This document shows, piece after piece, positions 38,821-64,000 of a stretch of 64,000 nt of DNA. The stretch spans positions 62,001-126,000 of the IMG/VR virus record IMGVR_UViG_3300042934_000980; one strand, given 5' to 3'. A program made the position numbers and the translations under genes. How positions within the stretch are numbered: position 1 is the first letter of the stretch; the number at the start of each line of letters is the position of its first letter. Below the pieces are notes generated by a model. That model ran no database searches. It was given only the letters and a program-made list of their open reading frames with translations, and had not been told where the DNA came from.

Positions 38821-38848
38821 GGTGTTCTCCTAGTTTAAGGGCATAGCA

Positions 38849-40576
38849 TTAAACAGGCTCAACGACAACGCCGGTCAGACCCAATTGCAGTTCTGCTCCG
38901 CTGCTGTCACGATTCACCCAACTGATGAACCAGGTCTTCCCTTTCTGCAACTCAATGCCGATCAGGTTATCCGTGTTCCAGTTGGCCAACGGGAAGCGCC
39001 ATTTCTGACCCGCTTCATTCATGAAGTCGAAGTGGGTTGGGTCAGGCGCCTTGTCCTCGTTGCGTGGGTCGTACGCAGGCGAGATCGCACGGTACAAGTC
39101 TTTGAGCCAGTCCACTTGATCGCGCTGGCCGTTACCGCTGGCCAGGTTGAAGGTGGTCTTGGAACCACTGTTCTTGACGTTGACCACTTTGCCGCCAAAG
39201 TACGGCATGTCTTGCGAGTAGCTCACCTCCCAACGCTTGCCCGGGCCGTTCACGTCTTTGTACAGAGTGATGCCGGTGTGCTGGATGAAGATCACGCTCT
39301 CGTAAGTGGGCGCAACGTCTCTGAGGTTCAGGTTGAAGATCATCGATTGGGCCACACCGTAAGAACGCGGACGGTAGGCTGGGCTCTTGTCATTCAACGT
39401 AACGAACTCGGTAACGTCGATCCGCGTTTTGCGGTCAAGGTCGAACAGGTAGTGCTTGAGGATGTAACCACCAGTTTCCGCATCCCACTGCGGGTAGGTG
39501 TAAATCTTGGGCGTGTACGCCCCGATAGGATCACCGGCTTGCAGGTAATACAAGCGGCTTTCATGGTCGGGGCTGCCTGGCTTGGCAATCTGGTGCTGCT
39601 CATCAGCGTCAAGTTTGTAAGTCAGGCTCAACTCACTCACTTGCCCAGGCCAGGTCGGGCGGTAAGCACCCAACCCGTACAGGTTGAACTTGGTGCCGTT
39701 TACCGGCATGGGTTCCGACTGACTGCCGTCACTGTAATGAACAATAGCACGCAGCTCTACCGACAGCAACTCGACGTTGATCGGGACGATCATCCGGTTC
39801 GGGTCGGTGGTGTTGGTAAACCACGGCGACAGCAGTTCGATCCCGGTAACATACTTGATCCCGATCTCGTGGTCACGCATGTACGCACAGTGTTGGACCA
39901 TCAACGGTTGAGCCGGTGGGATGAAGTTACCCCCCTCATCGTAGAACACCAGCCAGCAACGAGTGCCGTCAATAAGGCTTTGCTCATTTTCAGTGACGCT
40001 GAAAGTACCGGTGGTCATGATCGACAGGTTGGTGCGATCGACGATCTCGGCCAACTTGCACGGCACTTTGTTGTTGAGCAGGTTCAGGCTCTTGTCGTAC
40101 TGAGCGCTGATGATCTTGCCGTTCTCGCTGGCATCGTTGCCCAGAAAGACGTAGGCGTACGCAGCCCCTGGACGCATGATGGTGGAATCGCAGCGCGCCA
40201 CGTTAGGACGCACACTGTAATCCACGCTCAGCAACGCTTCACCCAGCAGAGGACCACCACGCAGGCCAAAGATCCAGTCCTGCTCGCTGGTGTTGCCTTC
40301 GTCGATGTTGGTGATGCGCCACGGTAGCAGGGTCGACTTAAGTGTTGCCTGCCAGTCCACCTTGTCCACGATGTAGATCACCCCATTAGGTGGGTCGAAC
40401 ACCAACTCCCCTTCCTGAGGCACCACGTACTTGTTGAGGTCATCCACCGGGTGCTTGTCCGGGTCGTAGATGTTGTGGATGTAGTGGAAGTTCTTACGTT
40501 CCCCCGTGTTCAGGACACTGGCGGCCACAGCCGCCACTGCACCTGTTGCGGTGGAATTGGGTTTACTATCGAACAT
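38849..40576 (-). CDS. Virion structural protein (phiKZ gp26-like, baseplate-associated)
   Basis: 575 aa, beta-rich, between terL and the gp27-like gene; synteny. Confidence 0.7.
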   Translation of the reverse strand: MFDSKPNSTATGAVAAVAASVLNTGERKNFHYIHNIYDPDKHPVDDLNKYVVPQEGELVFDPPNGVIYIVDKVDWQATLKSTLLPWRITNIDEGNTSEQDWIFGLRGGPLLGEALLSVDYSVRPNVARCDSTIMRPGAAYAYVFLGNDASENGKIISAQYDKSLNLLNNKVPCKLAEIVDRTNLSIMTTGTFSVTENEQSLIDGTRCWLVFYDEGGNFIPPAQPLMVQHCAYMRDHEIGIKYVTGIELLSPWFTNTTDPNRMIVPINVELLSVELRAIVHYSDGSQSEPMPVNGTKFNLYGLGAYRPTWPGQVSELSLTYKLDADEQHQIAKPGSPDHESRLYYLQAGDPIGAYTPKIYTYPQWDAETGGYILKHYLFDLDRKTRIDVTEFVTLNDKSPAYRPRSYGVAQSMIFNLNLRDVAPTYESVIFIQHTGITLYKDVNGPGKRWEVSYSQDMPYFGGKVVNVKNSGSKTTFNLASGNGQRDQVDWLKDLYRAISPAYDPRNEDKAPDPTHFDFMNEAGQKWRFPLANWNTDNLIGIELQKGKTWFISWVNRDSSGAELQLGLTGVVVEPV

Positions 40577-43184
40577 TATCGTTCACCTCGTAATGGCCTT
40601 CAATAACGCAAACTGACTGGAGGTAGCTGTCGTTCACCTGCTTGATGAACAAAAGCTCGTTGGAGGTCATCGTGAGTTTACCGACATTGGCAAACGGCAT
40701 GATGGCAAAGTAGCGACGGTCATACCCCAGCTGCACAGGGTCGTATTCCAGCCACCAGAGGTAGGGCTTTACCAGATCGCGGATGGCCTGCTCAGTGAAC
40801 ACCGAACTGTCTTCAGCCAGCTCAGGCAATTCAATAAAGCGGTTGATCAAGCCGTTGGTGATCACGTTCAAGAACGGGCTGTAAAGCCGGTACTTGTCTT
40901 GCAGGGTGGGCAACACCTTAGGTGGGGCGTTGGGTTTCTCCAGCCACTCGGTCAAGTAGTCACTGACCCGTTGATCCACATCCCGTGAACGTTGGTACAG
41001 GGGATAAGTGGCGTACGGTTCGATAAACTTCACCGGGGCGTAGACGTGCTTGACCATGTAGGGCTTGCCGTTGAGGCTTGCCGCCAGATCAGCACCTGAC
41101 CGTGTTTCGGCATTTGGAACCTCGTCGGTGAGGTAGAGGGCTCCATTGATAACCGTGCGAGTAACTCGATCATCGCGCAGGTTATACCGATCAAAGTTAC
41201 CGATAACCCCACCTTGCACAAACCCCAACTCGGTTTCAAACTTAGGCGTGTCTTGGTCATTGTGAAACCCATGCGCCCGTACCGTGATGGTTTGCGGACC
41301 GTCCACGATAAATTCCTTGTTGTGGATGTAGATGTACTTGTCCTTGTACATCCAGTCAACGAAGTCCACCAGTGGGTGACGGTTCAGCCACACGTCCACC
41401 TGAGCAAAGCTGATCGGGAAGATCAACCCACCGTCCTCGTAGATCACCGTCAGCGCAAACGCCAAGCTGTGGTCCATGTGGTCCAGTTCAAAGGTGTAAC
41501 TCAGGCTGGCCGAGTTAAACAACAGCACCCCGCGTTCGTTGACCTGGTCCAATGCCTTCCACTTGATCACCCCATCGATGACTTCGTAGAACCGGTCGTT
41601 ACCGGTGATGTCCGTCAGCTCCCCCACCACCGTCTGCAGATCGACGTTGTACGCACTCTTGTAGACCCGGAAGTCCACCTCAGGGTCCAAGGTGACGTCT
41701 TGGTTGGTGATGAGGTAGTCCACCTGCCGACCGGTTTGGCCAAAGGTAAATTCCACCATCACACAGCCTGAGTACTTGGGTGCGTAGTAACGTACGTTCT
41801 TCTGGTTCATCGACCCGAGCAGCAAACCTTCGGCGTCGTACTCCCAAGCGGTAAAGCTTTTGCGGTAGGTCGGTGGAACTTCAAAACCCCGAGTCCCCTG
41901 TTCGCTGAAGCTGACCCGTACCGGGGTTTCACTCACCACCCGCGTGGCTGCATTGTACCCCAGTGCGAGCGATGCGTTCTCACGTTTAACCGCCGGGTAC
42001 TGCGCCCGAGTCAACGCCATCACCGTACCACTTTCCAAGCCGTCAGCCGTCCACTCAGGTACCGTAGCCCGTTCACCGGTCATGGCCTTGACAATCCCCA
42101 CGTCATCCAAGCGGTACAGGTAACGGATGCGCTGGTGTTCGTGCGGCCACTGATGGTGCCAGTCGGTTTCACGCACCAACACCACCACCTTGACCTGAGA
42201 CAGGTCCTTAAGGTCTGCATGGAACTCACTGGCCCCTTGGATGGCATCGTCGGCCACTGCCACATCAGCATGGGTCAGCTGACGCACCGTGGTATTGCTG
42301 TTACGGTGCAGGTACAAGCCTTTACCTTTCGGACCGACCAGGTAGTAGTCATTGTCGTCAAAGTACCGGAAGGTGAAGTCGCCGTCCACTTTGGGTGGGT
42401 GCAGGATCAGCTTGCGCTTTTTGTCCAGGCTTGAGTAGTAATCGCGCAGCGTGTTGTACGCGTAACGCTCTACCCGAATGACCGTGGGGTCGTGCCAGAC
42501 CTCAACCGTGTCACCGACCACCAAGTTGGTCAAGGTGTTGGGAGCGCCGTCATGAAACACCCCGTTATGGAAACACCCGGTGTAACCAGGCAGCGCCTTG
42601 AACTTGCTGTACAGCGAAGTGAAGGCTGCCAGTTCTGAGGCGTTCTCATACGTCATGGTCTGGTAGTTGTAAGGGTTATGCGAGTTGTCCAGCGCACTAT
42701 CCCCGTAATCCACCCCCACGCTTGCTTGGTAGCAGCGAAAGAACATGTCGTCTTTGCTGGGGATCTTGTAACTGCCCAGCTTTTGCAACGCGATCAACAC
42801 CAAGCCGTCGTAGGTGACCATCGCCCACGCATGCGCCCGGCTGTACTGGAACCCACGGGTGTTGTAGATGTCCAGTTGCACACCACGCACTTTAAGCAAG
42901 GCTGCCACATTCACCCAACGGTCCAGCGGGTTGCGATTGAGCACCGCGTTCTTGATGTTCCAGTAGCCTGGGTGCAGACCGCCAACACTGAACACATGGT
43001 AAAACGTGTCACGCTTGGGCAGAGTGCGCCATTTACCCATGTAACTCCAGTTCAGCGTCACCCCGTACTCGTCCGAGATACGAACCAGTTTCACCTGGTG
43101 CTGGTGGTTCTCTTCAGGGTTGCCCCAGAGGTTGTCTTCCACGTACCGAACAACCGGGTTATTACTGTCGTAAACGGTCGTCAT
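40566..43184 (-). CDS. Virion structural protein (phiKZ gp27-like)
   Basis: 872 aa; NLWGNPEE, LILHPPK and RYFDDND motifs; synteny. Confidence 0.7.
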   Translation of the reverse strand: MTTVYDSNNPVVRYVEDNLWGNPEENHQHQVKLVRISDEYGVTLNWSYMGKWRTLPKRDTFYHVFSVGGLHPGYWNIKNAVLNRNPLDRWVNVAALLKVRGVQLDIYNTRGFQYSRAHAWAMVTYDGLVLIALQKLGSYKIPSKDDMFFRCYQASVGVDYGDSALDNSHNPYNYQTMTYENASELAAFTSLYSKFKALPGYTGCFHNGVFHDGAPNTLTNLVVGDTVEVWHDPTVIRVERYAYNTLRDYYSSLDKKRKLILHPPKVDGDFTFRYFDDNDYYLVGPKGKGLYLHRNSNTTVRQLTHADVAVADDAIQGASEFHADLKDLSQVKVVVLVRETDWHHQWPHEHQRIRYLYRLDDVGIVKAMTGERATVPEWTADGLESGTVMALTRAQYPAVKRENASLALGYNAATRVVSETPVRVSFSEQGTRGFEVPPTYRKSFTAWEYDAEGLLLGSMNQKNVRYYAPKYSGCVMVEFTFGQTGRQVDYLITNQDVTLDPEVDFRVYKSAYNVDLQTVVGELTDITGNDRFYEVIDGVIKWKALDQVNERGVLLFNSASLSYTFELDHMDHSLAFALTVIYEDGGLIFPISFAQVDVWLNRHPLVDFVDWMYKDKYIYIHNKEFIVDGPQTITVRAHGFHNDQDTPKFETELGFVQGGVIGNFDRYNLRDDRVTRTVINGALYLTDEVPNAETRSGADLAASLNGKPYMVKHVYAPVKFIEPYATYPLYQRSRDVDQRVSDYLTEWLEKPNAPPKVLPTLQDKYRLYSPFLNVITNGLINRFIELPELAEDSSVFTEQAIRDLVKPYLWWLEYDPVQLGYDRRYFAIMPFANVGKLTMTSNELLFIKQVNDSYLQSVCVIEGHYEVNDNVR

Positions 43185-44071: not shown

Positions 44072-44176
44072 CGTGTGGGTCCTCAAAATAACATGTTATG
44101 TGCCAGATGTATATGACACTGTACGGCCCTAATTTGGGTTGCATACGATTGCTCCAGGCCACTTACGAGGTTTTCC

Positions 44177-46342
44177 ATGACCATCTTCAACCAGATTGTA
44201 CCTGGGAAAGTTAACAACCGGGGGATCAACGACAAGTCGATCCCCGAGTACACGGTTAACTACCCTGTTTACCCGCTCCACCTCCCGGTGGTCTCGCTCG
44301 TCACTGCCAAGGGCGAAATTGCCGGCGAGAAAGGCACCCAGTTCATCAACCTTGCCAACTTCGATCAGATCTTCGGCAAGGTGAATGACCACAAGACGCC
44401 GTACTACAACCCCATCGCACTGCTGATTCAACAGCTGGGTCTGGGTGGTCAGTCGGTGATCGGTGTGCGTCGTCTGAGCGCCAACACCGCCATGTCCCGT
44501 GTGGCTCTGTCTGCCTTCGTGCAGAAAGTCACCGTCCAAGACTTCGAACGCGACCTGTCGGGCGCCTTCAAGCGTGACGAGAACGGCGACAAGATCGCAA
44601 CCGGTACCACGTTCGAAGGTATCAAGATTTCTGTCAAGCCTGACCCAGAAGCTGCAAAAGGTCAGTATGGCAAACTCGCCAATCGCGTTATCCCAGGCAC
44701 TCCTGCCCAAGGTGACACCCCCGCCGTGCCTGAAATCCAGGTGTTCCCTCTGGTAGAATACGCAGCCGGTATCGGCGACGCGTACAACGCCAGCGGTCTG
44801 AACATGGGTGTGACCAACTCGGCGCTGAACTGGAAGTCGGTTTCGTCTTTCGTCAAGGCGACCGGTGTGTTCCCGTACGAGCTCAAGATGTTCACCGACA
44901 GCGACGCTGGCGTGCGCACCTACAGCAAGACCACCGAAAAGCGCGAAAGCGCGCAGTTCACCTTCTTCCCAACTGAACTGAATGGCACTCAGTACAGCGT
45001 GAAGCGTGGCGTGGGCCTGTTCACCAACACCAACCAGAACCGCAAAGTGGTGCCAACCCCTTCGCCGTTCAAAGAAGCGTACGTCTACGATACCAACATC
45101 GACACCATCTGCCAGCTGATGTACGTCGTGGAGAAAGACCACAACGACACACTGGTTGAAGTGAGCGATCGTCCGTACCAGCAGATGAACTTCCTGACCT
45201 GCACCAACCACCTGGGCGCGCCGTACTACGCCGTGGTCGGCGACGACACCCCGCTGTGGGACCTGTCGGGTTCGGTGAAGTCTTCGGGCGGTATCAACCC
45301 GTTCTACAACGACAAGGGCGAACTGCCTGACTACGTGACCAAGCCGGAGATCAAAGATCCGTTCGGTTTGCTCGAAGGCGTCAAGCAACCGCTGTCGTCC
45401 ACCCAGGCCTGGGAAATCACCAACAAACTGTTGGCTGCCGACCTCAAGACCTACGTGAACGGCTCGGAGATCAAGAACTACACCCGCAACCGCCAGTCGG
45501 TCATGTGGGACGTAGGCTTCAGCAAAGAAGTCAAAGACATCGCGGTTCAGCTGCTCGCCAGCCGTCGTGACATCTTCGTCTTCCAGGACGCCACCGTCTG
45601 GGACCCAACCCTGGGCAACGACCTGGGCACTGTGTACTCGCGCTTCTCGTCGCTTGCGGCCGCAGCTCGGATGTACCCAGAGTCTGAGCAGTGGGGCACG
45701 GCAACCTGCCGTTCGGCGATCAACCTGATCGAAGCGAAACTGACCAACGAGCTGACCGGTAGCTACTTCTCCGGTAACCTCGACCTGGCCTACGCCTTCG
45801 CCGCCTTCGCGGGCAACAGCGCCGGCATCATCGTTCCAGCAGCTTCGCCGGACCACGGTGATAACCGTATCCTGCGCACCATGCACTCTCCGAACATCGA
45901 GTTCGAAGAAGACGAGATCGCCAACGACAACTTCGAGAACGGCGGCATCACGCTGCGTCCGTACGACGTCGAACAGCTGTTCCGTCCAGCCCTGATCACC
46001 GTTTACAACAACGATGATTCGGTCCTCAAAGACGCAGTCACTGCGTTCCTGTGCGTGTGCATCGAGAAGATCGTGCAAGACGAGTGGAACACTGTGTGCG
46101 GCGACACCAGCTACAGTGCGGCCAACTACGCAGCGCTGGTCAAAGACGGTGCCGAGCGTAAGCTGCGTGACCGCCTTGGCGGGCTGGTACCACAGATGAC
46201 CGTGGAGACGTCTTACGACGAAACCCGTCCAGGTGGTCGTGCGATCCTCAACACCGTCGTGAACGCTTACTTCAACAAGGGTAAGTACATGATGAACATG
46301 GACTTGTACGCTTACAACGAACAAGACCTGGCCACAGCCTAA
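44177..46342 (+). CDS. Major tail sheath protein (phiKZ gp29-like)
   Basis: 721 aa; GINDKS, PLHLP and WDVGFS...RRDI motifs; high-expression codon bias. Confidence 0.85.
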   Translation: MTIFNQIVPGKVNNRGINDKSIPEYTVNYPVYPLHLPVVSLVTAKGEIAGEKGTQFINLANFDQIFGKVNDHKTPYYNPIALLIQQLGLGGQSVIGVRRLSANTAMSRVALSAFVQKVTVQDFERDLSGAFKRDENGDKIATGTTFEGIKISVKPDPEAAKGQYGKLANRVIPGTPAQGDTPAVPEIQVFPLVEYAAGIGDAYNASGLNMGVTNSALNWKSVSSFVKATGVFPYELKMFTDSDAGVRTYSKTTEKRESAQFTFFPTELNGTQYSVKRGVGLFTNTNQNRKVVPTPSPFKEAYVYDTNIDTICQLMYVVEKDHNDTLVEVSDRPYQQMNFLTCTNHLGAPYYAVVGDDTPLWDLSGSVKSSGGINPFYNDKGELPDYVTKPEIKDPFGLLEGVKQPLSSTQAWEITNKLLAADLKTYVNGSEIKNYTRNRQSVMWDVGFSKEVKDIAVQLLASRRDIFVFQDATVWDPTLGNDLGTVYSRFSSLAAAARMYPESEQWGTATCRSAINLIEAKLTNELTGSYFSGNLDLAYAFAAFAGNSAGIIVPAASPDHGDNRILRTMHSPNIEFEEDEIANDNFENGGITLRPYDVEQLFRPALITVYNNDDSVLKDAVTAFLCVCIEKIVQDEWNTVCGDTSYSAANYAALVKDGAERKLRDRLGGLVPQMTVETSYDETRPGGRAILNTVVNAYFNKGKYMMNMDLYAYNEQDLATA

Positions 46343-46355
46343 GGGGTAAAGCAAC

Positions 46356-47258
46356 ATGGCAAATACCAACTACCCGCATCGGGATAACGATACGCTGCTG
46401 CCCCAGAGCGATCCGTTTGTCCAGGCGCTGGACCTCAGCAAACGCCCCGTCATCAACGCCGAGTCTGGCGGTATGTATGGCTGGGCGGGTAACGTCTTCG
46501 AGTACATCAGTGCTCAACCACACGTCTCGCAACAGAGCTGGTGCATCCTGCTGAGCTCGCCTGCGATGTTCTCCAAGCTGCCAGGTGGCGATCGTCTGCA
46601 CGCGCTGACCAAGGCGTTCTTCGAGAACCGCTCGCAGTCCTTCGAAGGTCTGCAGGACCGTACCGAACACGCCTTCGGGCGTCAGGAATGGACTGGTCAC
46701 GTCATGTCCATCCCAACCGGTGCTACCCGTACCCTGGGTTCGGTGACCCACACCGTGATCGACGTTGAAGGCGAGTCCTTCACCAAGCTGATCAAGATCT
46801 GGGGTCAGTGGGGCGTCATGGACCCTGAAATCCAGAACGCCAAGCTGGTGATCCTGGACGATCCGGGCGACATGCTGCTGGACGACGTCTCTGCGGCGGC
46901 TTGCTACTTTGAGCCTACCCGCAACATGCGCGATGTGGCTCACGCTGCGATCGTGGTCGGGATGATGCCCACCACCACCGTGCCGATCGAGCTCAAGCGC
47001 AACAAGGCAGAAGAGAACACCATCCGCACCATTCAGATGGAGTTCACCGGGGTTGTTGAAATGGACACCCTGGCGGTTAAGCAGATTGCTCGTCAACTGC
47101 TGGCCCTGCTCCCGCTGTACAACCCTGACGCAGTTGATGCGCCAGAAGGTTTCCGCAGCCGTACGTCGGTTCTGGAAGGTCTGCAGAACGCTGGTACCAT
47201 CGAGCGTATGACCAACCAGAAAGCGAAGGTGACTTCGGCCACCACGTACATGGGTTAA
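46356..47258 (+). CDS. Tail tube protein (phiKZ gp30-like)
   Basis: 300 aa, directly after the sheath gene; FEPT, GMMP and MEFTG motifs. Confidence 0.8.
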   Translation: MANTNYPHRDNDTLLPQSDPFVQALDLSKRPVINAESGGMYGWAGNVFEYISAQPHVSQQSWCILLSSPAMFSKLPGGDRLHALTKAFFENRSQSFEGLQDRTEHAFGRQEWTGHVMSIPTGATRTLGSVTHTVIDVEGESFTKLIKIWGQWGVMDPEIQNAKLVILDDPGDMLLDDVSAAACYFEPTRNMRDVAHAAIVVGMMPTTTVPIELKRNKAEENTIRTIQMEFTGVVEMDTLAVKQIARQLLALLPLYNPDAVDAPEGFRSRTSVLEGLQNAGTIERMTNQKAKVTSATTYMG

Positions 47259-47330: not shown

Positions 47331-47765
47331 CTAACGCGGGTTCTTACGCCGATCCCCTGTGTAGAGCTTGCCGCCAATCGACATCAGGTTATCGTTGTTC
47401 TTAAGCACCACTTGCCGAAATATTTCAAAGTCATTGGCATGCGATGCTGTCTTGGCAACGTTGGGATCGTTGTTCAAGATGTAGCGGTGGATCTGGCCGT
47501 CCGTGTACCACGCAGGGAAGATGACTTGCCACCCATCAGACTTCTTGAAAATGATGGGCTCTTCAGCATCTTTATCCCGGGTGATACGGATACAACCAGC
47601 GTAAATCCCCAACGAGTACTTAAAAACCAACCCGTCAGGTGTCTTCATCACGTGATAGGTAAACTCACGCTTCTCCATCATCCGTTGTACTACGAGTAAC
47701 GCAAGCACTACGTAAACCACAACGAGTACGGAGTTCATGGTTAGTTCATAAGCCAAAGGGGACAT
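47331..47765 (-). CDS. Membrane-anchored hypothetical protein
   Basis: N-terminal TM segment VLVVVYVVLALLVV; SD AGGAGG. Confidence 0.65.
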   Translation of the reverse strand: MSPLAYELTMNSVLVVVYVVLALLVVQRMMEKREFTYHVMKTPDGLVFKYSLGIYAGCIRITRDKDAEEPIIFKKSDGWQVIFPAWYTDGQIHRYILNNDPNVAKTASHANDFEIFRQVVLKNNDNLMSIGGKLYTGDRRKNPR

Positions 47766-47924: not shown

Positions 47925-48377
47925 TCAGTCGACTTCTGTCAAGTTCTTAAACAACTCGTAGTCGCCAAACTTACTCTTTACCGTTCCCTGGGTGCAGTCT
48001 TCGTAGACCAGTTCGGTAGTGGATTCGGTCAACAGGAAATACCCTGAGATCACCCCTGCCTTGTCCACGTACCCCACGGTGTAGAACTTCTCGCCTACGG
48101 TAAAGTAGACTTCCCGCCCCACACTGTTTTCAGGACCACTTTGGTGCAGGCTGGTACCCATGTTGTTGCCCAACTTGATAACCTGCTCACTGGGTGCTGA
48201 TAGGTCAGTCCCATAGCGCAAAGTAAACATGTCAGTCTTTGGGTTACGACTGACTTCAAGCTTTGAGCCATTGGCAAACCCACAGCTAAAAACCACATCG
48301 TTAACCTGCGGCGCTGCACGGACTAACTCCGCACCCATCGCCCAGATCACTATTACCCAGAACGCAATCCACTTCAT
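47925..48377 (-). CDS. Secreted/periplasmic protein
   Basis: Sec signal peptide MKWIAFWVIVIWAMGAELVRA-A; beta-rich mature domain with two Cys. Confidence 0.7.
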   Translation of the reverse strand: MKWIAFWVIVIWAMGAELVRAAPQVNDVVFSCGFANGSKLEVSRNPKTDMFTLRYGTDLSAPSEQVIKLGNNMGTSLHQSGPENSVGREVYFTVGEKFYTVGYVDKAGVISGYFLLTESTTELVYEDCTQGTVKSKFGDYELFKNLTEVD

Positions 48378-55600: not shown

Positions 55601-56449
55601 TTACCGGAACACGTCGAGCGAGTTGCTGCTAACCAGACGAATTGGCGCGCTGCGCTGCATCTTCATCAGCACGCCCATCATCTCGTTAACACGGTTGAAG
55701 CTTTCAGTGCCTTCAAAACGCGCCATGATAGCGTCGTTCTTAAAGCCCTTGTCCACGGCATGGATCAACTCATCCAGCGTGGTGGTCATCTCGTTGAAGC
55801 CATCGTTGATAGCCCCGTCCAGATAACTTTCCAGGCCCGCTGAGAGGTGCTTGCACGCCCGCATCACACCTTGTTCGACCACGACGTCGTAGGTGGAAAG
55901 GTATTCCACCTCGCGCACCATGTCGCCCATTTTCTGCGGTTTGGTAACCGAGCGCAGGGAGATGGCAAAGTTGATGTCCGGATTGGCCAGCGCATCTGCC
56001 GTCCAGGCCTTGTGCTCACCGAAAGGGGTCAGCTCCACTTCGTTGTGCACAGGGTCCTTATCACCGCCGGTCATGGTCCAGTGGATCTTGCGTATGTGCG
56101 CACACACGTTCGGCATCATGATCGTGCGCAAGCGGTTGATCCACTCAAACAGTTCGGTGATCGGCGTACGCACCACCACCCCGTTGACCCGCTCGAAGTA
56201 AAACTGCGGCGGGTGACCCAGCTCGCAGAACACTTGGCCTTCACTGACGCGGCGGTTCAGGTCGCTGTCAGGGGACATGCACTCTTTGAGGTAGTTGTTG
56301 AAGCTGTAGACCACACCACCCCGGTTAGGGATGTTGAAGCCGCCCGCGTTCATGCGGGTATAGCCTGAGCCGTCGCTCATGGGTTTGAGAATGCCACGCT
56401 TGCCGCTGCCGGCCAGGATGGTGTTCCCGAAGGTAATGACCTGAGTCAT
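55601..56449 (-). CDS. Prohead (head maturation) serine protease (phiKZ gp175-like)
   Basis: ELGHP (His), ISLRS (Ser), TYDVV (Asp). Confidence 0.85.
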   Translation of the reverse strand: MTQVITFGNTILAGSGKRGILKPMSDGSGYTRMNAGGFNIPNRGGVVYSFNNYLKECMSPDSDLNRRVSEGQVFCELGHPPQFYFERVNGVVVRTPITELFEWINRLRTIMMPNVCAHIRKIHWTMTGGDKDPVHNEVELTPFGEHKAWTADALANPDINFAISLRSVTKPQKMGDMVREVEYLSTYDVVVEQGVMRACKHLSAGLESYLDGAINDGFNEMTTTLDELIHAVDKGFKNDAIMARFEGTESFNRVNEMMGVLMKMQRSAPIRLVSSNSLDVFR

Positions 56450-57171
56450 CGTGGAACTCCTTTAATGATCTCTTCAAGATCCGTGACTTTGGTGTCGGGG
56501 TTGACGATGGCCGCCAAGGTGTTGTCTTGCAGATAGCCACCGAGCAATTTAGGGAACGTGCCGTCAATCAACATCGAGGTGTTGTTTAACCCCACGATCA
56601 ACGGGGGTCGCCCTTCCAGCATGGCTTTGCTGTGCCGGTAGGCGACGTCCGGGTTTTCAGGATCACGGAACTGCAACGAGTTGAAGACCCGCATCACCTG
56701 AGGACTGCTCCCCACTTTACCGCCACACTCGTATTGCGCGTAGTCATAAAGGGAAGTCAGGTCGTCCTTGTTCATGTACCACGGCAGCTTTGCGTACAGG
56801 TTGAACTCCAGGTAGTACGCATGGGGTTTGTTGGGGTCTTGGAGCACATCCAGGTTCTCAATGAGGGTATCCCCCTTTTCAAACCCCAGCACCAAGTACT
56901 GCACCCCTTTAATGGCCACTTCCCGGATGCTCAATGGCACCAAGGTAATGTCCATCATGGCCAACAGGGGAGCGTAACACTCCCCAGGAATGACCAACCC
57001 CAGTACAGCCGACGTCCACACCTTCTCCCCCACCGTGGCCATCCCGTTTTCCACAAACCGTTTAGGCAAGTGGACCTCAAGAGGACCATTGGCAACCACC
57101 GAGTTGTCCTCAAGGACCGTGTAGGCTTTGTGGATACGTGCGGAGTTCCTGATCAGTTGGCCAACTTCCAT
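56446..57171 (-). CDS. Conserved protein (phiKZ gp176-like)
   Basis: 241 aa; KLPWYM and KLLGGYL motifs; synteny. Confidence 0.65.
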   Translation of the reverse strand: MEVGQLIRNSARIHKAYTVLEDNSVVANGPLEVHLPKRFVENGMATVGEKVWTSAVLGLVIPGECYAPLLAMMDITLVPLSIREVAIKGVQYLVLGFEKGDTLIENLDVLQDPNKPHAYYLEFNLYAKLPWYMNKDDLTSLYDYAQYECGGKVGSSPQVMRVFNSLQFRDPENPDVAYRHSKAMLEGRPPLIVGLNNTSMLIDGTFPKLLGGYLQDNTLAAIVNPDTKVTDLEEIIKGVPR

Positions 57172-57174
57172 GCG

Positions 57175-58737
57175 TTAGACCCCCACGCAGTTTCTGACGA
57201 TCAACTTGATCAGCGACACATGCAGGCGCTGACGCTTGTCCACGATGTTGTCGGAACCATCACCGGTGATGAAGGTTTCTTCAACGATCGATGCCGCCAT
57301 GTTGCAGTTCATGGCCCGCAGGAACGTCGGGACCAAGGTGCTCGACAGCAGGGCTTCTTGGATCAACACGCTTGGGCTGACTGGAGAGATCGTGTCGCGG
57401 GTGGTGGAGATGTCCGCTTCATGCTCAGCCTGCATGATGGCCTTGGCCACCGTGTGGTAAGCCTTCTCGTACTCCAGACCCATCTGCTCGTTGAACCAGA
57501 CTTCAGGCAAGCCTTCGGCCGGCACCAGTTGCAGCATGCGGGCTTTGAGCGCTGGGGTTTCGTAGATGTAACGCAGTGCCCGCTCTTGCGCGGTCTTGAC
57601 GAACACCTGTTGCGCCCGCTGGGTCAGCGCGCTGTTGATCGAGTTGTAGTAGGCGTTAGCCCCTTCACGCACCCGGATTGGATCGGACAGCAGTGGTACC
57701 GGTTCCAGCGACCCGCCGTTGAAGCGCGAGTACAGCAGCGCAATCAACCACTCGTTGAAGCTGATCCCGTTCTTTTCCAGCATGGCCAAGGCCTGGTTGG
57801 AGTAGAACACCTGGACATTGCCGGCCATGAAACGAGCACCCGAGTAGTCGGGGTTTTCATGACTGGAGATGGTCACAGGTTCCATCTCGCCGATGGCCAC
57901 CGTGCGGTGCACGTAAGCGTTGGCGATTTGCTTCAGACCGATCAGGTAACGCGTCAGGCCGTTCCACAGGGTGGAGACGTATTCGCGGTAGTCGGTGAGC
58001 GAGCCTTTGACCAACCACTTGACCGGGTCATCGTCGGTGTACATCTTGGTCAACACCACGTACATCTTGAGCAGGCGATTGATCTCCAAGCTCTTGATGG
58101 TGGTGAAGTTGAACAGGTACTGACCGTTGTTGACAAACAGCTGACGCAGGTCGTAGATCTCGCCGATGCCGTTAGTCGCTTCGGTGAGTTCGTAGTCGGT
58201 GGACTTGAGGATCTCCACCACATCAGGGTGCGAGGCGTTGATGTATTCCAGCACTTCAGTGCCGTCTACCCAACGGAACTCCAGCCGCTCTTTGACCGCC
58301 AACGAGACGCTGGTGAAGTCCAAGACGGTGTTCTTCATCTCCACCGGGTACAGCGGGGACTGGAAGAACGGGTCTTCCACGTTGATGAAGTTGTAACGGA
58401 TCTTGCTGAACGCCAGGTGCTTGAGGCGGTCGGGGGTGTAAAGCACCGACAGTTCACCGGCCAAGGTTTTGGCAAACGGCACACCAAAGGTCTTGACCAC
58501 ATCGAACGCCCCACGGATCGCTTCAGCCAGCTTGGTGCTGGTAGCGTCCAAGATTGCACTGTGGGAGTTGTTGGCGGTGACCTGTTCGAGCTCTTGACGA
58601 AACAGCTCGTTGTACTGCGCCGAACCGTGGCTCTGTTCGTTCAGGCCTTGCACCAGCGGTTTGGCTGGGAAGGGGGTGGCTTTGTTCACCGAAATGGCGA
58701 TGGCTTCACCCAAGGCAATGCTTTGACCACGGATCAT
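57175..58737 (-). CDS. Conserved protein (phiKZ gp177-like)
   Basis: 520 aa; synteny. Confidence 0.6.
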   Translation of the reverse strand: MIRGQSIALGEAIAISVNKATPFPAKPLVQGLNEQSHGSAQYNELFRQELEQVTANNSHSAILDATSTKLAEAIRGAFDVVKTFGVPFAKTLAGELSVLYTPDRLKHLAFSKIRYNFINVEDPFFQSPLYPVEMKNTVLDFTSVSLAVKERLEFRWVDGTEVLEYINASHPDVVEILKSTDYELTEATNGIGEIYDLRQLFVNNGQYLFNFTTIKSLEINRLLKMYVVLTKMYTDDDPVKWLVKGSLTDYREYVSTLWNGLTRYLIGLKQIANAYVHRTVAIGEMEPVTISSHENPDYSGARFMAGNVQVFYSNQALAMLEKNGISFNEWLIALLYSRFNGGSLEPVPLLSDPIRVREGANAYYNSINSALTQRAQQVFVKTAQERALRYIYETPALKARMLQLVPAEGLPEVWFNEQMGLEYEKAYHTVAKAIMQAEHEADISTTRDTISPVSPSVLIQEALLSSTLVPTFLRAMNCNMAASIVEETFITGDGSDNIVDKRQRLHVSLIKLIVRNCVGV

Positions 58738-58910
58738 GCTGCACCCCCATTGACCTGAGCCACGATCGCTTTGGAGATCTGCTCTTCCTGCGTGGCGTTA
58801 TCCAGTGGGGCGATGTATTCCAACCCGACCTTGTTGATGGTGGCCTGGACCAGCTCCACCGTGTTGGCGAAGGTGATAGTGTCAGCCACCAGAGTTTCTT
58901 TATTGACCAT
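58734..58910 (-). CDS. Small hypothetical protein
   Basis: MVNKETL..., SD AAGGG, overlapping stop/start with the next gene. Confidence 0.55.
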   Translation of the reverse strand: MVNKETLVADTITFANTVELVQATINKVGLEYIAPLDNATQEEQISKAIVAQVNGGAA

Positions 58911-58933
58911 GATCAAACCCTTTGTTGAAATGT

Positions 58934-59821
58934 TCAGAGAATAACGCGGTTGGCCGTGTCCATCCCCGAGTAGAAGGTGTCGTACAGCCGGGACGAGATT
59001 TCACCCACGGTGATCTTCCCGTCCCTGTCAAAGTCAAAGCCTTTGTTCTGGGTGTAAGCTTTCAGGTGCGCCGAGTTACTGCGATCGAACAACACCTGGT
59101 CCGCTGACATGCCCACCGCTTTGGGGTAAAAGATGGTCAGGTAGAAGTCTTCCAGCTGGTTGTACTCCTTGCCCCACTTGGCCCACAGGTCAAAGTAGGC
59201 AAAGACTAGGTCCAGCTGATCCATCTGGGACATGCGCTTGATTTGGTCAAGCGTAGTCCCTAGGTCCTTAGCAGCACCGGCCATGAACTGAATCAGGCCG
59301 TAGGCTTGAGAGCCTGCCGCGTTTTGAATGTCAGGACGGAATGTACCGGCCGACTCAAAACACATGCAGGCCATCAGCCAATGCACCGCCTCTGGTGGAT
59401 GGCCCCGCATTTTGACCCACGCGCGGATCTTGGCGATAAACGCCTTGGTCACACGCTTGCTCCAGGCTGCGTCGTAGGCTGGGACGTTGTTCTGGGTGAT
59501 GAACGACATGTAAGGCACGTAGACACCGTTGTAGGTGCCGTTGCCATAAATGCCGTCTACTTTACCAGGATACGTTCCAGCGGCCTTGAGCAGGTCCTGA
59601 ACGCGTCCAATGGCCTGATCCACCTCATCCCCGGCAATCGCCGTGTAGGTGGGTGCAGGCATGGGACGGCCCGTGGTGGAGCGGTGGTGAAAGTCCAGCA
59701 TCTGCTGCAAACCTTTCAACGTGCCAGGACCCATCTTGCCGTCAATACTGCCGGCATACAGCGCCGCTTCCTTCGTCATTACCTGGACGGTCCGTAGCCC
59801 GTTGAGGTTTTTGTACTTCAT
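58934..59821 (-). CDS. Modular endolysin, EL188-like (two peptidoglycan-binding repeats plus a lytic transglycosylase-type domain)
   Basis: IDGKMGPGT and VDGIYGNGT PG-binding repeats; WLMACMCFES (catalytic Glu), YGLIQFM, EF-hand-like DFDRDGKIT; no signal peptide. Confidence 0.92.
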   Translation of the reverse strand: MKYKNLNGLRTVQVMTKEAALYAGSIDGKMGPGTLKGLQQMLDFHHRSTTGRPMPAPTYTAIAGDEVDQAIGRVQDLLKAAGTYPGKVDGIYGNGTYNGVYVPYMSFITQNNVPAYDAAWSKRVTKAFIAKIRAWVKMRGHPPEAVHWLMACMCFESAGTFRPDIQNAAGSQAYGLIQFMAGAAKDLGTTLDQIKRMSQMDQLDLVFAYFDLWAKWGKEYNQLEDFYLTIFYPKAVGMSADQVLFDRSNSAHLKAYTQNKGFDFDRDGKITVGEISSRLYDTFYSGMDTANRVIL

Positions 59822-62800
59822 TTGTTGGTACCCCTGTAAATGGCAATGGCTTGGCCAGTAACGGCAATGGTGAGCTCACAGCTGATCAACTTGTTCCGGT
59901 AACTGAGTACCATCCGGTTGAACATCCCTTTCATACTGGATTTGATCAGCACTTCGCGCCCGTCCTCAGTCATGAGTGGCTTGTGCATGATGCTGCCCAC
60001 GGTGCCTTTCATCTGGTTGGCAATCACGTATTTGTCAGCGTTGGTACTGGGGTCCATGGATTCGACGTAGATGGTGATGAACGCCTTGCCCGGAGAGAGC
60101 ATCGGTTTGTTCACGTTAAGCACGGTTGATACCGCACCCTTTTCCACCTCAGAGCCTTCGATACCGGCAAGGCGCTTACGCTTTCTGTCCTGGCTCCCGA
60201 TAAACTTCTCAACGCTTTTGGACATCTGCTCAGGCGTGGCGTTGTAGACCACATCGATGTCGACCACTTTACCGTGGTGATTGGAGCGGATCTGCTTAAT
60301 GCCAATGCGGTTAATGTCCATTGCCAACTCGTTTTCTGTGTAATCGCCCACTAGGTGGGGCTCCTCCACATCGCATAAAATCGAGTCGTAATCAACAGAA
60401 TCACCCACTTTAACCTTAAGGTCGATGTTCCAATCCACATCGATTGCAAAGCGCTTGACCTTGATGAACGGGGTTACCGACTCGTCAGCCAAGGATTTTG
60501 CAATGGCCAAACTGTCCTCGTACACGTCTTGGTCTTCCACCAGCGCAATGCGTGCCATGCGCCCCACTTTCAAGGCCACCTGACCTGGGCAGAACGGGTC
60601 GCGGTCAAACCACTGAACGTCCCAACCCACCACATCACCCTTGCTGAACTTATCCCCCACCTTCAGGTCCGTTACCCGAGTATGACGATGATACTCACCC
60701 GACGCCTCACCGATCTTCAGCCCCAAGGGGTAGGTGTCGGTGGTGCCGTCTTTGTAGGTGATCTTGAGGAACTCATCGCTGACCTCAGTGACCTTACCGT
60801 CTTGCGCCGCCACTTTGCTGTACAGCTCGCTGGTACGGTGCGCCACGATGTTGTCCATCCCGGTGCGCAGGATGTTGGGTACGTAGTTCTGAGCACTGAC
60901 CGCCTGACTGGCCTGAGTCGAGGTAAAGGTACCCCGTTTCGGGTCGTCATGCGCCACGCCGTACATCAGGTTACCAGTGATCGAGGCCAGGCCTGTGTTG
61001 GTCGGCTTTTCGTCCAACGCCAAGTTACCGCGAAAGTCCTTGATGGTCGGGTCAGAGGTGAGGTAGGTCACAAACCCTACTTTACCGCTGTCCTTGTTGG
61101 CTTCCGATACCCGCCCTTTGTAGGTGTCAAGCTGTTGCCGTGCGCGCTTGACCATGGTGATCTCGCTGCGCCCACCGGTGCCACCGAACGTCATCTCCTC
61201 TTGGTCTTTCAACTGGTGAATCGGGTTCACCTCTTCCACCAAGTTCACCGAGGTATCGGTAATGATGTTGAGGATCACCGCTTCAGGGTTGATGTCCAGG
61301 GTGTGCTTGCGCTCACCGCCCTTGTTGCGGTACTGCCGGGTGGACTTGACCAGTTCACGGTACACGTGCCCTGCAAAGCGCTCGTAGCCCACGATCCGCT
61401 GCTCTTCGATCTCCACCTCATGACGAGAGAAGTCGGTCTCCAGCAACTTGACCGCATCGATCAGCAGGTAGTGGAAGTCTTCCGAGTACCCCAGGCGCTT
61501 GAGTTCGTCCTTGGTGATCGGGTCGATGAACAGGTCAAACAGCAGCTTCATTTCCTTGAACTGCTGCGGCCGCACCTTAGGGTCACCCATCAGCGGCACC
61601 CAGATACCCTTCTCGTTCAGATCAGAGCGGCTGAAGTTGCTGATGTTGTTAAGCTTAGGCATGCCCCCAAAGATCAGGCTGGCCAGCTTCTCACGGCGGT
61701 TAAAGATCAGGTACTCATCGTTAAACGCGATGGCGTACTCATCGGGGTCCAGTTTAGGGCGCGTCCCCATGGGCACCGAACGGGTGGTAGCCTTGACCAC
61801 CTTGATCAGCTCGTCGATCCCAAAGTAGTAGCACAGCACCACGCCAATGGGGAACAGGAAACCGCTGATGTTGATGACCGCGTACTCGATCGGGGCTTTG
61901 CTCAAGCTGATCCCCATCAAGCCTTCGACCGTGTTGATCTCCTCGGTGCCCTTGTACAGGTTACCAAAGCTGTCCACCCACAGCGGCTCGCCGTCCTTCA
62001 CCCCCACCAGGAAACTTTCTTTCTTGGTGTACTTCTTAAAGTCGGGGTGTTCTTTGAGCAGCTCATCGATGTTGAAGTTCAAGGTGAGGTCACCCACCTG
62101 GATAAAGCTGAACTTCTTGGCCAGGATGCTGTAGATGCGCGGGGAGACGTAGTCGGGGTTGTACCCAGAACCCAAACTGTAACTGAGGGTTGCCGGTACC
62201 CCGTCTTTGGTTTCCCCACGGGCGCGGATCTGCTTGACCAACCAGAGGGAGTAGTCATCGACCACTTTCTGACTGCGGCTGATCATCAGCTTGCGGTCGT
62301 AGTAGCTGGTCAAGGCCACCTTCACCGGGCTGATCTTGCGGATCGGCAGTTCCATGCGCTGCAGCTGCAAGTGCTGCTTAACCCCGTCCACGGTAAACGT
62401 GGCATCCTTCTGCACCCGTGGCAGGCGAATCTCCGAGGTGCTTTGTGCCCCATTGACCGGATGACGCTGGAACTTGTACACGTCATAACTGCCTTCAACC
62501 CCGTTGACCACCCGGTGTTCCAAGGCCGTCAGACAGATCCCGGCGTTCTGGATCCCGACAAACATACGAGCAATGTCTTTGTGCAGGAACTTCTCAGCGT
62601 ACTCGCGCTTAAGCACTGCAGCGCGGCTGCGCAGCATGCTCTCATCCAACACGGTGATGAAGTTGCCTTCGATCTTACCGTCCAGGCTGTTGAGCTCTTC
62701 AGGGGAGATGGTCATGAACTCGGCCAAGGTTTGACCGTTTTCCATTTCAATCTGCTGATAGCTCATGGCCTTGCGCATGAAGTGCTGCTGCTCGGCGACT

Positions 62801-64000
62801 GTCAAGACGCCGTCACGGGCCCGCTCTTCCAAGGCCAGCTGCACGCCGCTTTCCGGGGTCGGGAAGGCGTTGCGTTTAACCGTGATGTCGGCGGCGGTGG
62901 TTTCAACCTCCAGCAGCTTATCGTCTACGGCGCTGGTCCAATCCCCAGCATCTTCAGGATCAGGTACGTTTGCCGCGTCTCCTTGTCCCGCGTCCAGGTG
63001 TTCGTGATGTCCCGGGTCACCTCGGAGAACATCAGCGAGGCTACCACCAGTGCCAGAATCACCCAGATGCTCAGGCGAGCGAGGAACTTGTCCTTCTTCT
63101 CCGTCACCGGATGCTCGTCTTTGCTTTTGCGCAGCTCCTGTCGATCCTGGAGCCACTTGGCCAGCTTCTTTTTCGTCGCCGGCTTCTCCTCTTCCATCAC
63201 TGCTCTCCTCGGCCAGCTCTTTCTCGGTGGCCACCATACCAGAGAGTGTCATCAAGGCCAGATAAAAACGCTTAGTTACGTTCAGACGTTTGGACGACGA
63301 CATGGGGTGGCTGCCGTCTTTGGGGTTGAGCTCATCAAGCCACTCTTGTAGAGTTTTGACGTTGATCACCAGCGCTTTACTGTTGGCGGTAAAGATCCAG
63401 TGCAAGTCTTCCCGAGCTTGTGGGGTGAGCTTGCCGAATTGACTGTGGGTATAGTCGCCCAGCAAGAAAGCCATCAGGTCCAGCAACCAGTAAGAGTTCT
63501 GTGCCTTGGTTACCCGAATAACCGGGTTAGAAGGAACTGGAAGGCCGTCTTTAAAGCTTCCCACAAACTTTTCATAGTCCACCATCAGGTCGTTGTAGCG
63601 AGGTAGGTTAAGCGGCAGTTCAATACGAACGTACTGCTTGCGTCGGTTGCTACGCTCAGCCTCAACGTTAATCCCCTCGATCAACATGTTGAGGCGGTTG
63701 TAGCTTTGCTCAAACGCCATGAACATGGCAGAGCGCTGCGCCCAGGTCTTTTCGGCCAAGGCGTAGTTCTTCACCACCAACACGTCGGCTTTGTTCCAGA
63801 CGGTGTTGATGTCTTTGGTCCAGTTGTAGGTGTAGTGGCTGGCCCGGTACGCTTGGATGGCTTTACGCGCATCAAAGGTCAGAAGCCGCCCGCTGCCCAA
63901 GACCGGTTGGAACTTGGTCTCAAACTGGATGAAGACATTGTCCGGGCAGTTGGCAATGAACGCCTCAGACGTTGAAGGACCCAAGTCTTCAGCTAACTTG
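59818..64000 (-). CDS. Virion RNA polymerase beta subunit (phiKZ gp178-like); 5' end beyond the window
   Basis: Frame stays open to the edge (...KLAEDLGPSTSE); GGTGGRS, HDDPKR, VYEDS and ADKYVIANQMKGTV beta-subunit motifs. Confidence 0.92.
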   Translation of the reverse strand, partial: KLAEDLGPSTSEAFIANCPDNVFIQFETKFQPVLGSGRLLTFDARKAIQAYRASHYTYNWTKDINTVWNKADVLVVKNYALAEKTWAQRSAMFMAFEQSYNRLNMLIEGINVEAERSNRRKQYVRIELPLNLPRYNDLMVDYEKFVGSFKDGLPVPSNPVIRVTKAQNSYWLLDLMAFLLGDYTHSQFGKLTPQAREDLHWIFTANSKALVINVKTLQEWLDELNPKDGSHPMSSSKRLNVTKRFYLALMTLSGMVATEKELAEESSDGRGEAGDEKEAGQVAPGSTGAAQKQRRASGDGEEGQVPRSPEHLGDSGTGGSLADVLRGDPGHHEHLDAGQGDAANVPDPEDAGDWTSAVDDKLLEVETTAADITVKRNAFPTPESGVQLALEERARDGVLTVAEQQHFMRKAMSYQQIEMENGQTLAEFMTISPEELNSLDGKIEGNFITVLDESMLRSRAAVLKREYAEKFLHKDIARMFVGIQNAGICLTALEHRVVNGVEGSYDVYKFQRHPVNGAQSTSEIRLPRVQKDATFTVDGVKQHLQLQRMELPIRKISPVKVALTSYYDRKLMISRSQKVVDDYSLWLVKQIRARGETKDGVPATLSYSLGSGYNPDYVSPRIYSILAKKFSFIQVGDLTLNFNIDELLKEHPDFKKYTKKESFLVGVKDGEPLWVDSFGNLYKGTEEINTVEGLMGISLSKAPIEYAVINISGFLFPIGVVLCYYFGIDELIKVVKATTRSVPMGTRPKLDPDEYAIAFNDEYLIFNRREKLASLIFGGMPKLNNISNFSRSDLNEKGIWVPLMGDPKVRPQQFKEMKLLFDLFIDPITKDELKRLGYSEDFHYLLIDAVKLLETDFSRHEVEIEEQRIVGYERFAGHVYRELVKSTRQYRNKGGERKHTLDINPEAVILNIITDTSVNLVEEVNPIHQLKDQEEMTFGGTGGRSEITMVKRARQQLDTYKGRVSEANKDSGKVGFVTYLTSDPTIKDFRGNLALDEKPTNTGLASITGNLMYGVAHDDPKRGTFTSTQASQAVSAQNYVPNILRTGMDNIVAHRTSELYSKVAAQDGKVTEVSDEFLKITYKDGTTDTYPLGLKIGEASGEYHRHTRVTDLKVGDKFSKGDVVGWDVQWFDRDPFCPGQVALKVGRMARIALVEDQDVYEDSLAIAKSLADESVTPFIKVKRFAIDVDWNIDLKVKVGDSVDYDSILCDVEEPHLVGDYTENELAMDINRIGIKQIRSNHHGKVVDIDVVYNATPEQMSKSVEKFIGSQDRKRKRLAGIEGSEVEKGAVSTVLNVNKPMLSPGKAFITIYVESMDPSTNADKYVIANQMKGTVGSIMHKPLMTEDGREVLIKSSMKGMFNRMVLSYRNKLISCELTIAVTGQAIAIYRGTNK
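62925..63197 (-). CDS. Nested +1-frame single-pass membrane protein inside vRNAP beta (candidate holin or lysis regulator)
   Basis: SD GAGGAG 7 nt before ATG; genome-typical G/C-ending codons; TM segment LSIWVILALVVASLMF; the host frame is a low-complexity linker exactly over this span. Confidence 0.7.
   Translation of the reverse strand: MEEEKPATKKKLAKWLQDRQELRKSKDEHPVTEKKDKFLARLSIWVILALVVASLMFSEVTRDITNTWTRDKETRQTYLILKMLGIGPAP

Follow-up and report, generated by a model that had tools for sequence, protein, structure and literature searches.

Does the linker of a phage virion RNA polymerase gene encode a second protein in another reading frame, and could this protein be the holin that has been missing from these phages? 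We analysed a window of 64,000 nucleotides (positions 62,001 to 126,000 of IMG/VR record IMGVR_UViG_3300042934_000980), in which an earlier note had proposed an overprinted membrane-protein gene as a candidate holin or lysis regulator. What the note observed in the sequence is there, in every statement that we checked. Its interpretation is partly supported: the evidence for an overprinted membrane-protein gene that annotation misses, with selection acting on the nested frame, is strong, whereas a role in lysis is an inference from topology and context.

Architecture of the nested reading frame

The ORF lies in the +1 frame relative to the virion RNA polymerase (RNAP) gene. The locus comprises the following features, all on the minus strand:

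59818-63984 (-), host gene, virion RNAP beta-like subunit (phiKZ gp178 orthologue), 1388 aa.
62925-63230 (-), acidic, Gly/Ser-rich, poorly conserved linker of the RNAP frame, which evolves almost neutrally and carries the overprinted gene.
63205-63210 (-), Shine-Dalgarno (SD)-like GAGGAG, 7 nt upstream of the ATG.
62925-63197 (-), nested +1-frame ORF, 90 codons plus the stop TAG (62925-62927), starting at the ATG at 63197; an alternative GTG lies at 63200.
63075-63197 (-), basic N-terminal domain, residues 1-41 (12 K+R), with the conserved WL-(K/Q)-(E/D)-R and FLAR motifs, predicted to be cytoplasmic; AF2 helix at residues 9-26.
63027-63074 (-), predicted single transmembrane (TM) helix LSIWVILALVVASLMF, residues 42-57, best 17-residue hydropathy window 2.46; L55 and F57 are nearly invariant in the family.
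62928-63026 (-), C-terminal tail of 33 residues with a conserved Arg and an L-I-L-K-like motif, predicted to be periplasmic; AF2 helix at residues 73-83.
58934-59821 (-), soluble modular endolysin of the EL188/OBPgp279 type (PG-binding domain plus transglycosylase-like domain), whose ATG (59821) overlaps the RNAP stop as ATGA.
55601-58916 (-), downstream head-morphogenesis block: a 60-aa gp177.1-position protein, then gp177-like and gp176-like virion proteins, then the head maturation protease; none has a TM segment.

The endolysin has a PG_binding_1 domain, a weak SLT match and no hydrophobic N-terminus, in agreement with the earlier note, which had described it as lacking a signal or SAR sequence. 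Two details of the note require correction. The tandem GTG-ATG start is not conserved; relatives align on the ATG, so that the protein has 90 rather than 91 residues, and a lambda-style dual start is not supported. By our reading of the upstream sequences, about 16 of 21 orthologues have a GGAG/GAGG/AGGA core 4-15 nt upstream of the aligned ATG, but the purine-rich SD partly follows from the GAG/GAA repeats of the acidic linker and is not independent evidence. An ATG aligns across the family, and conservation continues right after it.

Conservation, selection and codon usage in the overlap

ORF length plus a hydrophobic stretch is not significant by itself in this 55% GC window: 35 genes contain 19 same-strand alternative-frame runs of at least 90 codons, and 2 of these carry a hydrophobic stretch. 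The decisive evidence comes from codon usage, conservation and selection. The codon adaptation index (CAI) of the nested frame is 0.67, against 0.71 +/- 0.08 for genuine-gene windows and 0.32 +/- 0.03 for +1 frames elsewhere in the RNAP gene. The RNAP frame across the overlap has a CAI of 0.41, the lowest in the gene, and GGA (RSCU 0.10) occurs 9 times in those 90 codons, which bears out the contrast between genome-typical and uncommon codons drawn in the earlier note. Among 89 alternative-frame runs of at least 60 codons, this one has the top CAI (0.62; others 0.385 +/- 0.049, maximum 0.48) and is the only run that exceeds its host frame.

Translation of the alternative frames in orthologous RNAP genes had been put forward in advance as a check, with frequent stops in close relatives as the outcome that would speak against the gene. 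The same ORF, in the same frame, at the same site and with the same architecture, is present in 21 of 21 sampled relatives (EL, OBP, RisingSun, Miami, Aeromonas and Vibrio jumbo phages; GC 37-56%), with stop-free runs of 93-153 codons. At a fixed site, a stop-free run of that length has a probability of about 1e-2 to 1e-4 per lineage. Carriers and non-carriers split at one 100/100-supported branch of the RNAP tree, and the 10 outgroups, including phiKZ, lack the ORF. The modelled ORFs are 75-144 aa, each with one conserved TM domain (TMD; best 19-residue hydropathy window 1.8-2.8). Three lineages (L020-L022) appeared to encode a two-TMD variant; however, their N-terminal extension shows RNAP-type and not nested-type substitution, and the true start is probably the internal ATG at codon 43, giving about 99 aa.

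An analysis of synonymous-site constraint, likewise proposed beforehand, shows that purifying selection inside the overlap acts on the nested frame. For the closest pair of relatives (L005/L007), differences at RNAP codon positions 1/2/3 are 20/6/3 inside the overlap, where changes synonymous only in RNAP number 2 and changes synonymous only in the nested frame number 22; outside, the figures are 45/22/170 and 155 versus 24 (Fisher p = 1e-14). In the same pair, amino-acid identity in the overlap is 0.71 for the RNAP frame and 0.94 for the nested frame. For the window's own lineage (window versus relative L042), the counts are 33/21/12 and 10 versus 26 inside, and 67/44/162 and 142 versus 35 outside (p = 2e-9). 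Codon-model likelihoods for overlapping genes were not fitted. That the similarity is a passive by-product of RNAP conservation is rejected, as the RNAP frame is the less conserved one in the overlap. A compensated double frameshift or sequencing error, with the nested frame as the true RNAP frame, is rejected as well: the RNAP frame stays open and the nested frame is bounded by stops in all 21 lineages, and outgroups such as phiKZ also have an acidic linker in the RNAP frame.

None of the GenBank records examined annotates the ORF or any other gene inside the RNAP gene. Searches of Pfam (no family at E of 0.1 or below apart from scattered noise), PHROGs, PDB sequences and BFVD folds gave no match; the family profile was built from IMG/VR rows only, and the AF2 model is only moderate (pLDDT 65). 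Only six fragment-derived entries were found among 1.84 billion representative proteins.

Candidate functions of the nested protein

We consider it very likely that the ORF is a genuine, translated gene created by overprinting the disordered acidic linker. In this view, an internal ribosome-binding site and ATG on the RNAP-endolysin mRNA would give a 90-aa single-pass inner-membrane protein; the gene would have arisen once, at the base of the EL/OBP/RisingSun/Miami/Aeromonas/Vibrio branch of nucleus-forming jumbo phages, and every sampled descendant has kept it, while the RNAP frame drifts almost freely in the overlap. The ORF, its conservation, the frame-specific selection and the codon adaptation follow directly from the sequences, whereas translation, topology and function are inferred. 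There is no direct evidence of translation, membrane insertion or lethality; neither ribosome profiling nor proteomic data were examined, and neither timed, PMF-sensitive lethality nor release of a soluble endolysin was assayed. The role that we consider most likely, although only tentatively, is a holin or holin-like lysis-timing protein that lets the adjacent soluble endolysin reach the cell wall; taken as a whole, this explanation is about as likely as not. If the holin reading is true, which is possible but less likely than not, the long-missing holin of the EL/OBP/RisingSun/Aeromonas/Vibrio branch was born de novo on the linker, where GAG/GAA repeats would supply a ribosome-binding site and a Lys/Arg-rich cytoplasmic domain for free, and its synthesis would share a message with the virion RNAP and the endolysin.

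Several properties agree with a holin. The ORF is small with a single TMD, and flank charges mostly favour an N-in orientation, although the positive-inside signal is modest in several members. It lies 3.1 kb upstream of the endolysin gene on the same strand, without another gene start in between, and a scan found no minus-strand terminator-like site there; a sigma-70 promoter scan also found nothing but is not informative for a phage with its own RNAP. This adjacency held in all 10 carrier lineages checked, but it is inherited from an RNAP-endolysin synteny that also exists in Agricanvirus phages without the nested ORF, so that linkage to the endolysin does not settle the assignment either way. 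The missing-holin context described in the earlier note is real: the endolysin is soluble, the genes downstream have no TM segment, and the two carrier-clade genome papers that we checked do not mention a holin. No similarity to any holin family was found in the sequence and profile searches, and no spanin genes lie nearby; whole-genome censuses of TM proteins and spanins were not part of the analysis. Another N-terminally anchored membrane protein (47331-47765 (-)) exists in the window and in EL-like phages and remains a possible alternative holin candidate.

The most serious rival, which we regard as less likely, is that the gene is real and overprinted but serves head or virion morphogenesis (for example, anchoring procapsid assembly at the membrane), superinfection exclusion or another membrane-linked step of infection by nucleus-forming phages. 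It lies in a conserved head block (RNAP beta', RNAP beta, (endolysin), a gp177.1-position protein, gp177-like, gp176-like, head protease), which fits a non-lysis role equally well, chimallivirus procapsids assemble at the inner membrane, and the Agricanvirus phages show that adjacency does not require the ORF. On the other hand, no homology supports such a role, phiKZ-type phages share the head block and do without the ORF, its size and charge layout are typical of small holins, and the carrier clade has no other reported holin. It is unlikely, though not excluded, that the protein is lysis-related without being the hole-former, that is, an antiholin, a lysis-timing regulator or a cationic membrane-disrupting substitute for spanins. 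The strongly basic, predicted helical N-domain, the absence of spanin genes near the endolysin and the extra regulator acting on the cytoplasmic domain of the holin in phiKZ lysis would fit this reading. A second, N-terminally anchored membrane protein (47331-47765 (-)) could then be the true holin; tblastn found it only in EL-like phages, a much narrower distribution than that of the nested gene, and no partner has been identified.

We regard it as very unlikely that the ORF is not translated from its own start, being either a non-functional by-product of linker composition or reached by +1 ribosomal frameshifting to give a membrane-anchored N-terminal RNAP fragment. Acidic linkers do give K/R-rich, stop-poor +1 frames even in outgroups (Noxifer 119 codons, RSL2 98, LPKP23 75), long alternative-frame runs are common in the window, and SD-like motifs can stimulate frameshifting, as in prfB. 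However, the outgroup runs have no TM helix, a by-product cannot explain substitutions concentrated at nested codon position 3, the difference in identity between the frames or the CAI of 0.67, and we saw no slippery site or in-frame stop in the RNAP frame.

Comparison with known systems

The earlier note had cited the T4 holin as a precedent, but the closer analogue is the phiKZ class IIIB holin gp142 (Manohar et al. 2026, PMC12894885). Gp142 is from the same phage family, has a single TMD with predicted N-in/C-out topology, the larger soluble domain at the cytoplasmic N-terminus and a short periplasmic tail, and serves a soluble transglycosylase-type endolysin; it shows that a class III holin of this layout works in this phage family. 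The predicted layout of the window protein (41 residues, the TMD, 33 residues) resembles it, with N-side charge higher in most members. We detected no homology between the two (hhalign probability 0.4%). Gp142 is a free-standing 131-aa gene in a cassette with spanins and the regulator gp143, whereas the nested protein is 90 aa and overprinted. The two were found in different branches of the family, by tblastn and ORF scans: tblastn found gp142 homologues only in the phiKZ/PhiPA3/201phi2-1/Noxifer/Phabio group, which does not carry the nested ORF in the two members checked. T4 gp t (class III) shares the single TMD and N-in/C-out topology, but it has a large periplasmic regulatory domain, which the 33-residue tail does not match, and no Pfam hit links the two.

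Lysis genes nested in other genes are already known. Gene E of phiX174, within gene D, is a lysis gene of about 91 codons, wholly embedded in the +1 frame of an essential gene, and encodes a single-TMD membrane protein missed by length-based gene calling. E is a single-gene lysis protein (an MraY inhibitor) with an N-terminal TMD in a phage without an endolysin; here the TMD is central, an endolysin gene is adjacent and the host gene is a virion RNA polymerase. Lambda Rz1, nested in the +1 frame within Rz, is a lysis-cassette gene of a dsDNA phage and shows that overprinting is a recurrent route to lysis functions, but Rz1 is an outer-membrane lipoprotein with a lipobox nested in its functional partner, whereas the nested protein has no lipobox or signal peptide and a functionally unrelated host gene.

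The carriers include long-studied or applied phages, namely EL, OBP, RisingSun, and Klebsiella, Aeromonas and Vibrio jumbo phages considered for therapy or biocontrol, and the ORF sits in one of their core genes, absent from the annotations examined and the protein-family libraries searched. It provides a testable candidate for how these phages release their well-known endolysins (EL188, OBPgp279). As a case of gene birth, a new gene on a disordered linker has taken over the selective constraint from an essential gene, its single origin can be placed on a phylogeny, and outgroups preserve proto-gene-like states. Mutations, tags or deletions placed in the seemingly dispensable RNAP linker of these phages would hit a second gene. 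Elsewhere in the window, the apparent multi-TM ORFs at 37752-38838 (+), considered as other holin candidates, are antisense shadows of hydrophilic minus-strand genes.

The nested ORF and its codon usage

On the minus strand, the beta-like subunit of a phiKZ-type virion RNA polymerase (RNAP) is encoded by a 1388-codon gene, whose orthologues were found by tblastn in 136-303 jumbo-phage records. The +1 frame of this gene holds the ORF described in the earlier note, and that observation held. The following features are relevant here:
59818-63984 (-), RNAP beta-like gene, 1388 codons
63205-63210 (-), GAGGAG, 7 nt before the ATG of the nested ORF
63200 (-), GTG, and 63197 (-), ATG, starts of the nested ORF
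62925-62927 (-), TAG stop of the nested ORF
58934-59821 (-), endolysin gene, starting on the RNAP stop as ATGA

The 90-aa product comprises a Lys/Arg-rich N-terminal region (residues 1-41), a hydrophobic helix (residues 42-57), and a 33-residue tail. The endolysin is soluble and modular and of the EL188/OBPgp279 type, with a PG_binding_1 domain, a weak SLT match and no hydrophobic N-terminus. The window is part of the 220-kb IMG/VR contig UViG_3300042934_000980, and its nearest named relatives are EL-like Pseudomonas phages, at about 70% DNA identity and only outside the nested ORF.

Taken alone in this 55% GC window, the ORF is not more than chance would provide: same-strand alternative-frame runs of at least 90 codons occur 19 times in 35 genes, and two of them contain a hydrophobic stretch. 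The earlier note had further argued from codon usage that selection appears to act on the nested frame, and this argument holds up. The nested frame has a CAI of 0.67, compared to 0.71 +/- 0.08 for genuine 90-codon gene windows and 0.32 +/- 0.03 for +1 frames elsewhere in the RNAP gene, while the RNAP frame drops to 0.41 across exactly this span, where the rare codon GGA (RSCU 0.10) is used nine times. Among 89 alternative-frame runs of at least 60 codons in the window, this run ranks first (0.62; others 0.385 +/- 0.049) and is the only one that beats its host frame. Another alternative-frame run with a hydrophobic stretch (117 codons, +1 frame of 40566-43184 (-) at aa offset 600; best 17-residue window 2.05), which was not examined in relatives, has a CAI that is not among the top values and so looks like chance.

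Conservation and frame-specific selection

A tblastn search with the 91-aa translation gave only weak hits, and in six phage genera the hit lay inside their own vRNAP beta gene. In Yubaba and OBP it lies in the same +1 frame, in an open ORF of 94-98 codons with the same layout. We then sampled orthologous RNAP genes using the RNAP, not the nested ORF, as the query. Every one of 21 lineages had a +1 stop-free run of 93-153 codons at the same place, with a TM helix: the window clade; EL, RisingSun, Miami and PDCC-1; AerS_266, PS2 and LAh10; Yubaba, OBP and pEt-SU; and several uncultured contigs. Their GC content ranges from 37% to 56%, and the conserved motifs are WL-(K/Q)-(E/D)-R, FLAR/FLGR, L55, F57, and an L-I-L-K-like tail. 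Given each gene's own +1 stop density, a stop-free run of that length at a fixed site has a probability of 1e-2 to 1e-4 per lineage. Ten outgroups have no such ORF (phiKZ, Noxifer, Goslar, Eowyn, Xoo-sp14, RSL2, SpecialG, PhiEaH1, PCH45 and LPKP23). On an RNAP tree, carriers and non-carriers are the two sides of a single branch with 100/100 support, which fits one origin.

We classified each substitution by whether it is synonymous in (i) the RNAP frame, (ii) the nested frame, (iii) both or (iv) neither, inside the overlap and in the flanks, an analysis of synonymous constraint that the earlier note had proposed. The results are given for the closest pair of sampled lineages (L005/L007) and for the window and L042, a pair representing the window's own lineage.

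Table. Substitutions inside and outside the overlap. Columns: pair and region; differences at RNAP codon positions 1/2/3; RNAP-synonymous-only changes; nested-synonymous-only changes; amino-acid identity, RNAP frame; amino-acid identity, +1 (nested) frame.
L005/L007, inside; 20/6/3; 2; 22; 0.71; 0.94
L005/L007, outside; 45/22/170; 155; 24; 0.90; 0.63
Window/L042, inside; 33/21/12; 10; 26; 0.52; 0.67
Window/L042, outside; 67/44/162; 142; 35; 0.81; 0.52

Fisher p is 1e-14 for L005/L007 and 2e-9 for window/L042. For L005/L007 inside the overlap, the per-opportunity rates give dN/dS of about 0.08 for the nested frame and about 1 for the RNAP frame; the other pairs show the same direction, weakening with saturation. 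So the nested frame carries the constraint, and the polymerase linker is close to neutral. In L020-L022 (IMG/VR OBP-like contigs), the +1 ORF extends about 45 codons further upstream (nested ORF codons 1-44) and would add a second hydrophobic helix. Substitutions in this extension follow the RNAP frame and do not show the nested-frame pattern, while the core does. The extension is therefore probably not translated, the start is probably internal, and the one-TMD layout is general.

None of the GenBank records fetched annotates a gene inside the RNAP gene. A search of 5.8 billion protein clusters found one relative, and a profile search of 1.84 billion representatives found six, all 60-90 aa. 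The two that we traced lie on contigs of 706 and 1538 nt, where the RNAP ORF is truncated, so that the gene caller fell back on the nested ORF. Searches for a Pfam or PHROG family, a PDB relative or a BFVD fold match returned none, and literature searches found no description of the gene.

Inferred origin and function

The RNAP linker is acidic in outgroups too, for example in phiKZ gp178. GAG/GAA repeats read in +1 give AGG/AAG, which yields Lys/Arg-rich, stop-poor sequence and SD-like motifs. Outgroups show such K/R-rich +1 runs without any TM helix (Noxifer, 119 codons; RSL2, 98; LPKP23, 75), showing that acidic linkers generically offer stop-poor basic alternative frames. This is the expected substrate for gene birth by overprinting, although the step from these runs to the gene is inference. 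In the outgroup phage Goslar, a 57-codon +1 ORF with a basic start and a weakly hydrophobic end sits at the homologous linker position (RNAP aa offset 280), and may be chance or a proto-gene-like state.

The open frame, its conservation and the constraint on it are read directly from the sequence comparisons, whereas the function is inferred. We consider it very likely that this is a real, translated, overprinted gene. The earlier note's interpretation, an overprinted lysis component that standard annotation would miss, is partly supported; a holin is the leading but still tentative assignment. The protein is small with a single TMD, and its N-side is more basic in most members, which favours N-in/C-out. 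It lies on the same strand as a soluble endolysin and 3.1 kb upstream of it, with no other gene start between them and no minus-strand terminator-like site found by the scan, and the endolysin follows the RNAP gene in all ten carrier lineages checked. The genome papers for Miami and ZPAH34 do not mention a holin. phiKZ, which lacks the nested ORF, has a separate cassette of spanins gp141/141.1, holin gp142, regulator gp143 and endolysin gp144, where gp142 has been shown experimentally to be a class III holin with a long cytoplasmic N-domain and a short periplasmic tail (PMC12894885), the layout predicted here. tblastn finds gp142 homologues only in the phiKZ/PhiPA3/201phi2-1/Noxifer/Phabio group, so that the two families look complementary within the sensitivity of that search.

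Other evidence weighs against a holin. There is no homology to gp142, Agricanvirus phages keep the RNAP-endolysin adjacency without the nested ORF, no spanins are nearby, and the block is also the head-morphogenesis operon, ending in the head protease. A non-lysis membrane role is the next candidate, less likely than a holin; another lysis role is unlikely, and an ORF that is untranslated or reached by frameshifting is very unlikely. Another membrane-anchored protein also exists in the window and in EL-like phages: 47331-47765 (-) encodes 144 aa with an N-terminal TM anchor and was found by tblastn only in EL-like phages (37% identity), while the neighbouring gene, 47925-48377 (-), encodes a 150-aa protein with a signal-peptide-like N-terminus. 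Apart from the nested gene, these are the only other credible membrane or secreted proteins in the 64 kb, and are possible lysis or envelope functions.

Further features of the RNAP locus and the window

A small (60-66 aa) non-membrane protein gene sits at the equivalent position in Miami, SpecialG, phiKZ (gp177.1, 31622-31819 of the phiKZ sequence) and the window (58734-58916 (-)), that is, after the endolysin or, in phiKZ, directly after the RNAP beta gene. The window protein matches phrog_17945 (unknown function); homology between the four was not tested directly. Very long antisense ORFs of 940, 708 and 746 aa lie opposite real genes at 60529-63351 (+), 56632-58758 (+) and 44129-46369 (-), respectively. 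The 940-aa ORF is exactly in codon register with the RNAP gene, and its stops would therefore correspond to the sense codons TTA, CTA and TCA, which are rare here (1.3, 2.0 and 2.4 per 1000). These are shadow ORFs, not genes. In phage EL (NC_007623, 194056-202295), the vRNAP genes are interrupted: an HNH endonuclease gene sits between two RNAP-annotated CDSs, and a 458-nt gap splits the beta gene into gp186 and gp187, which suggests an intron or homing element.
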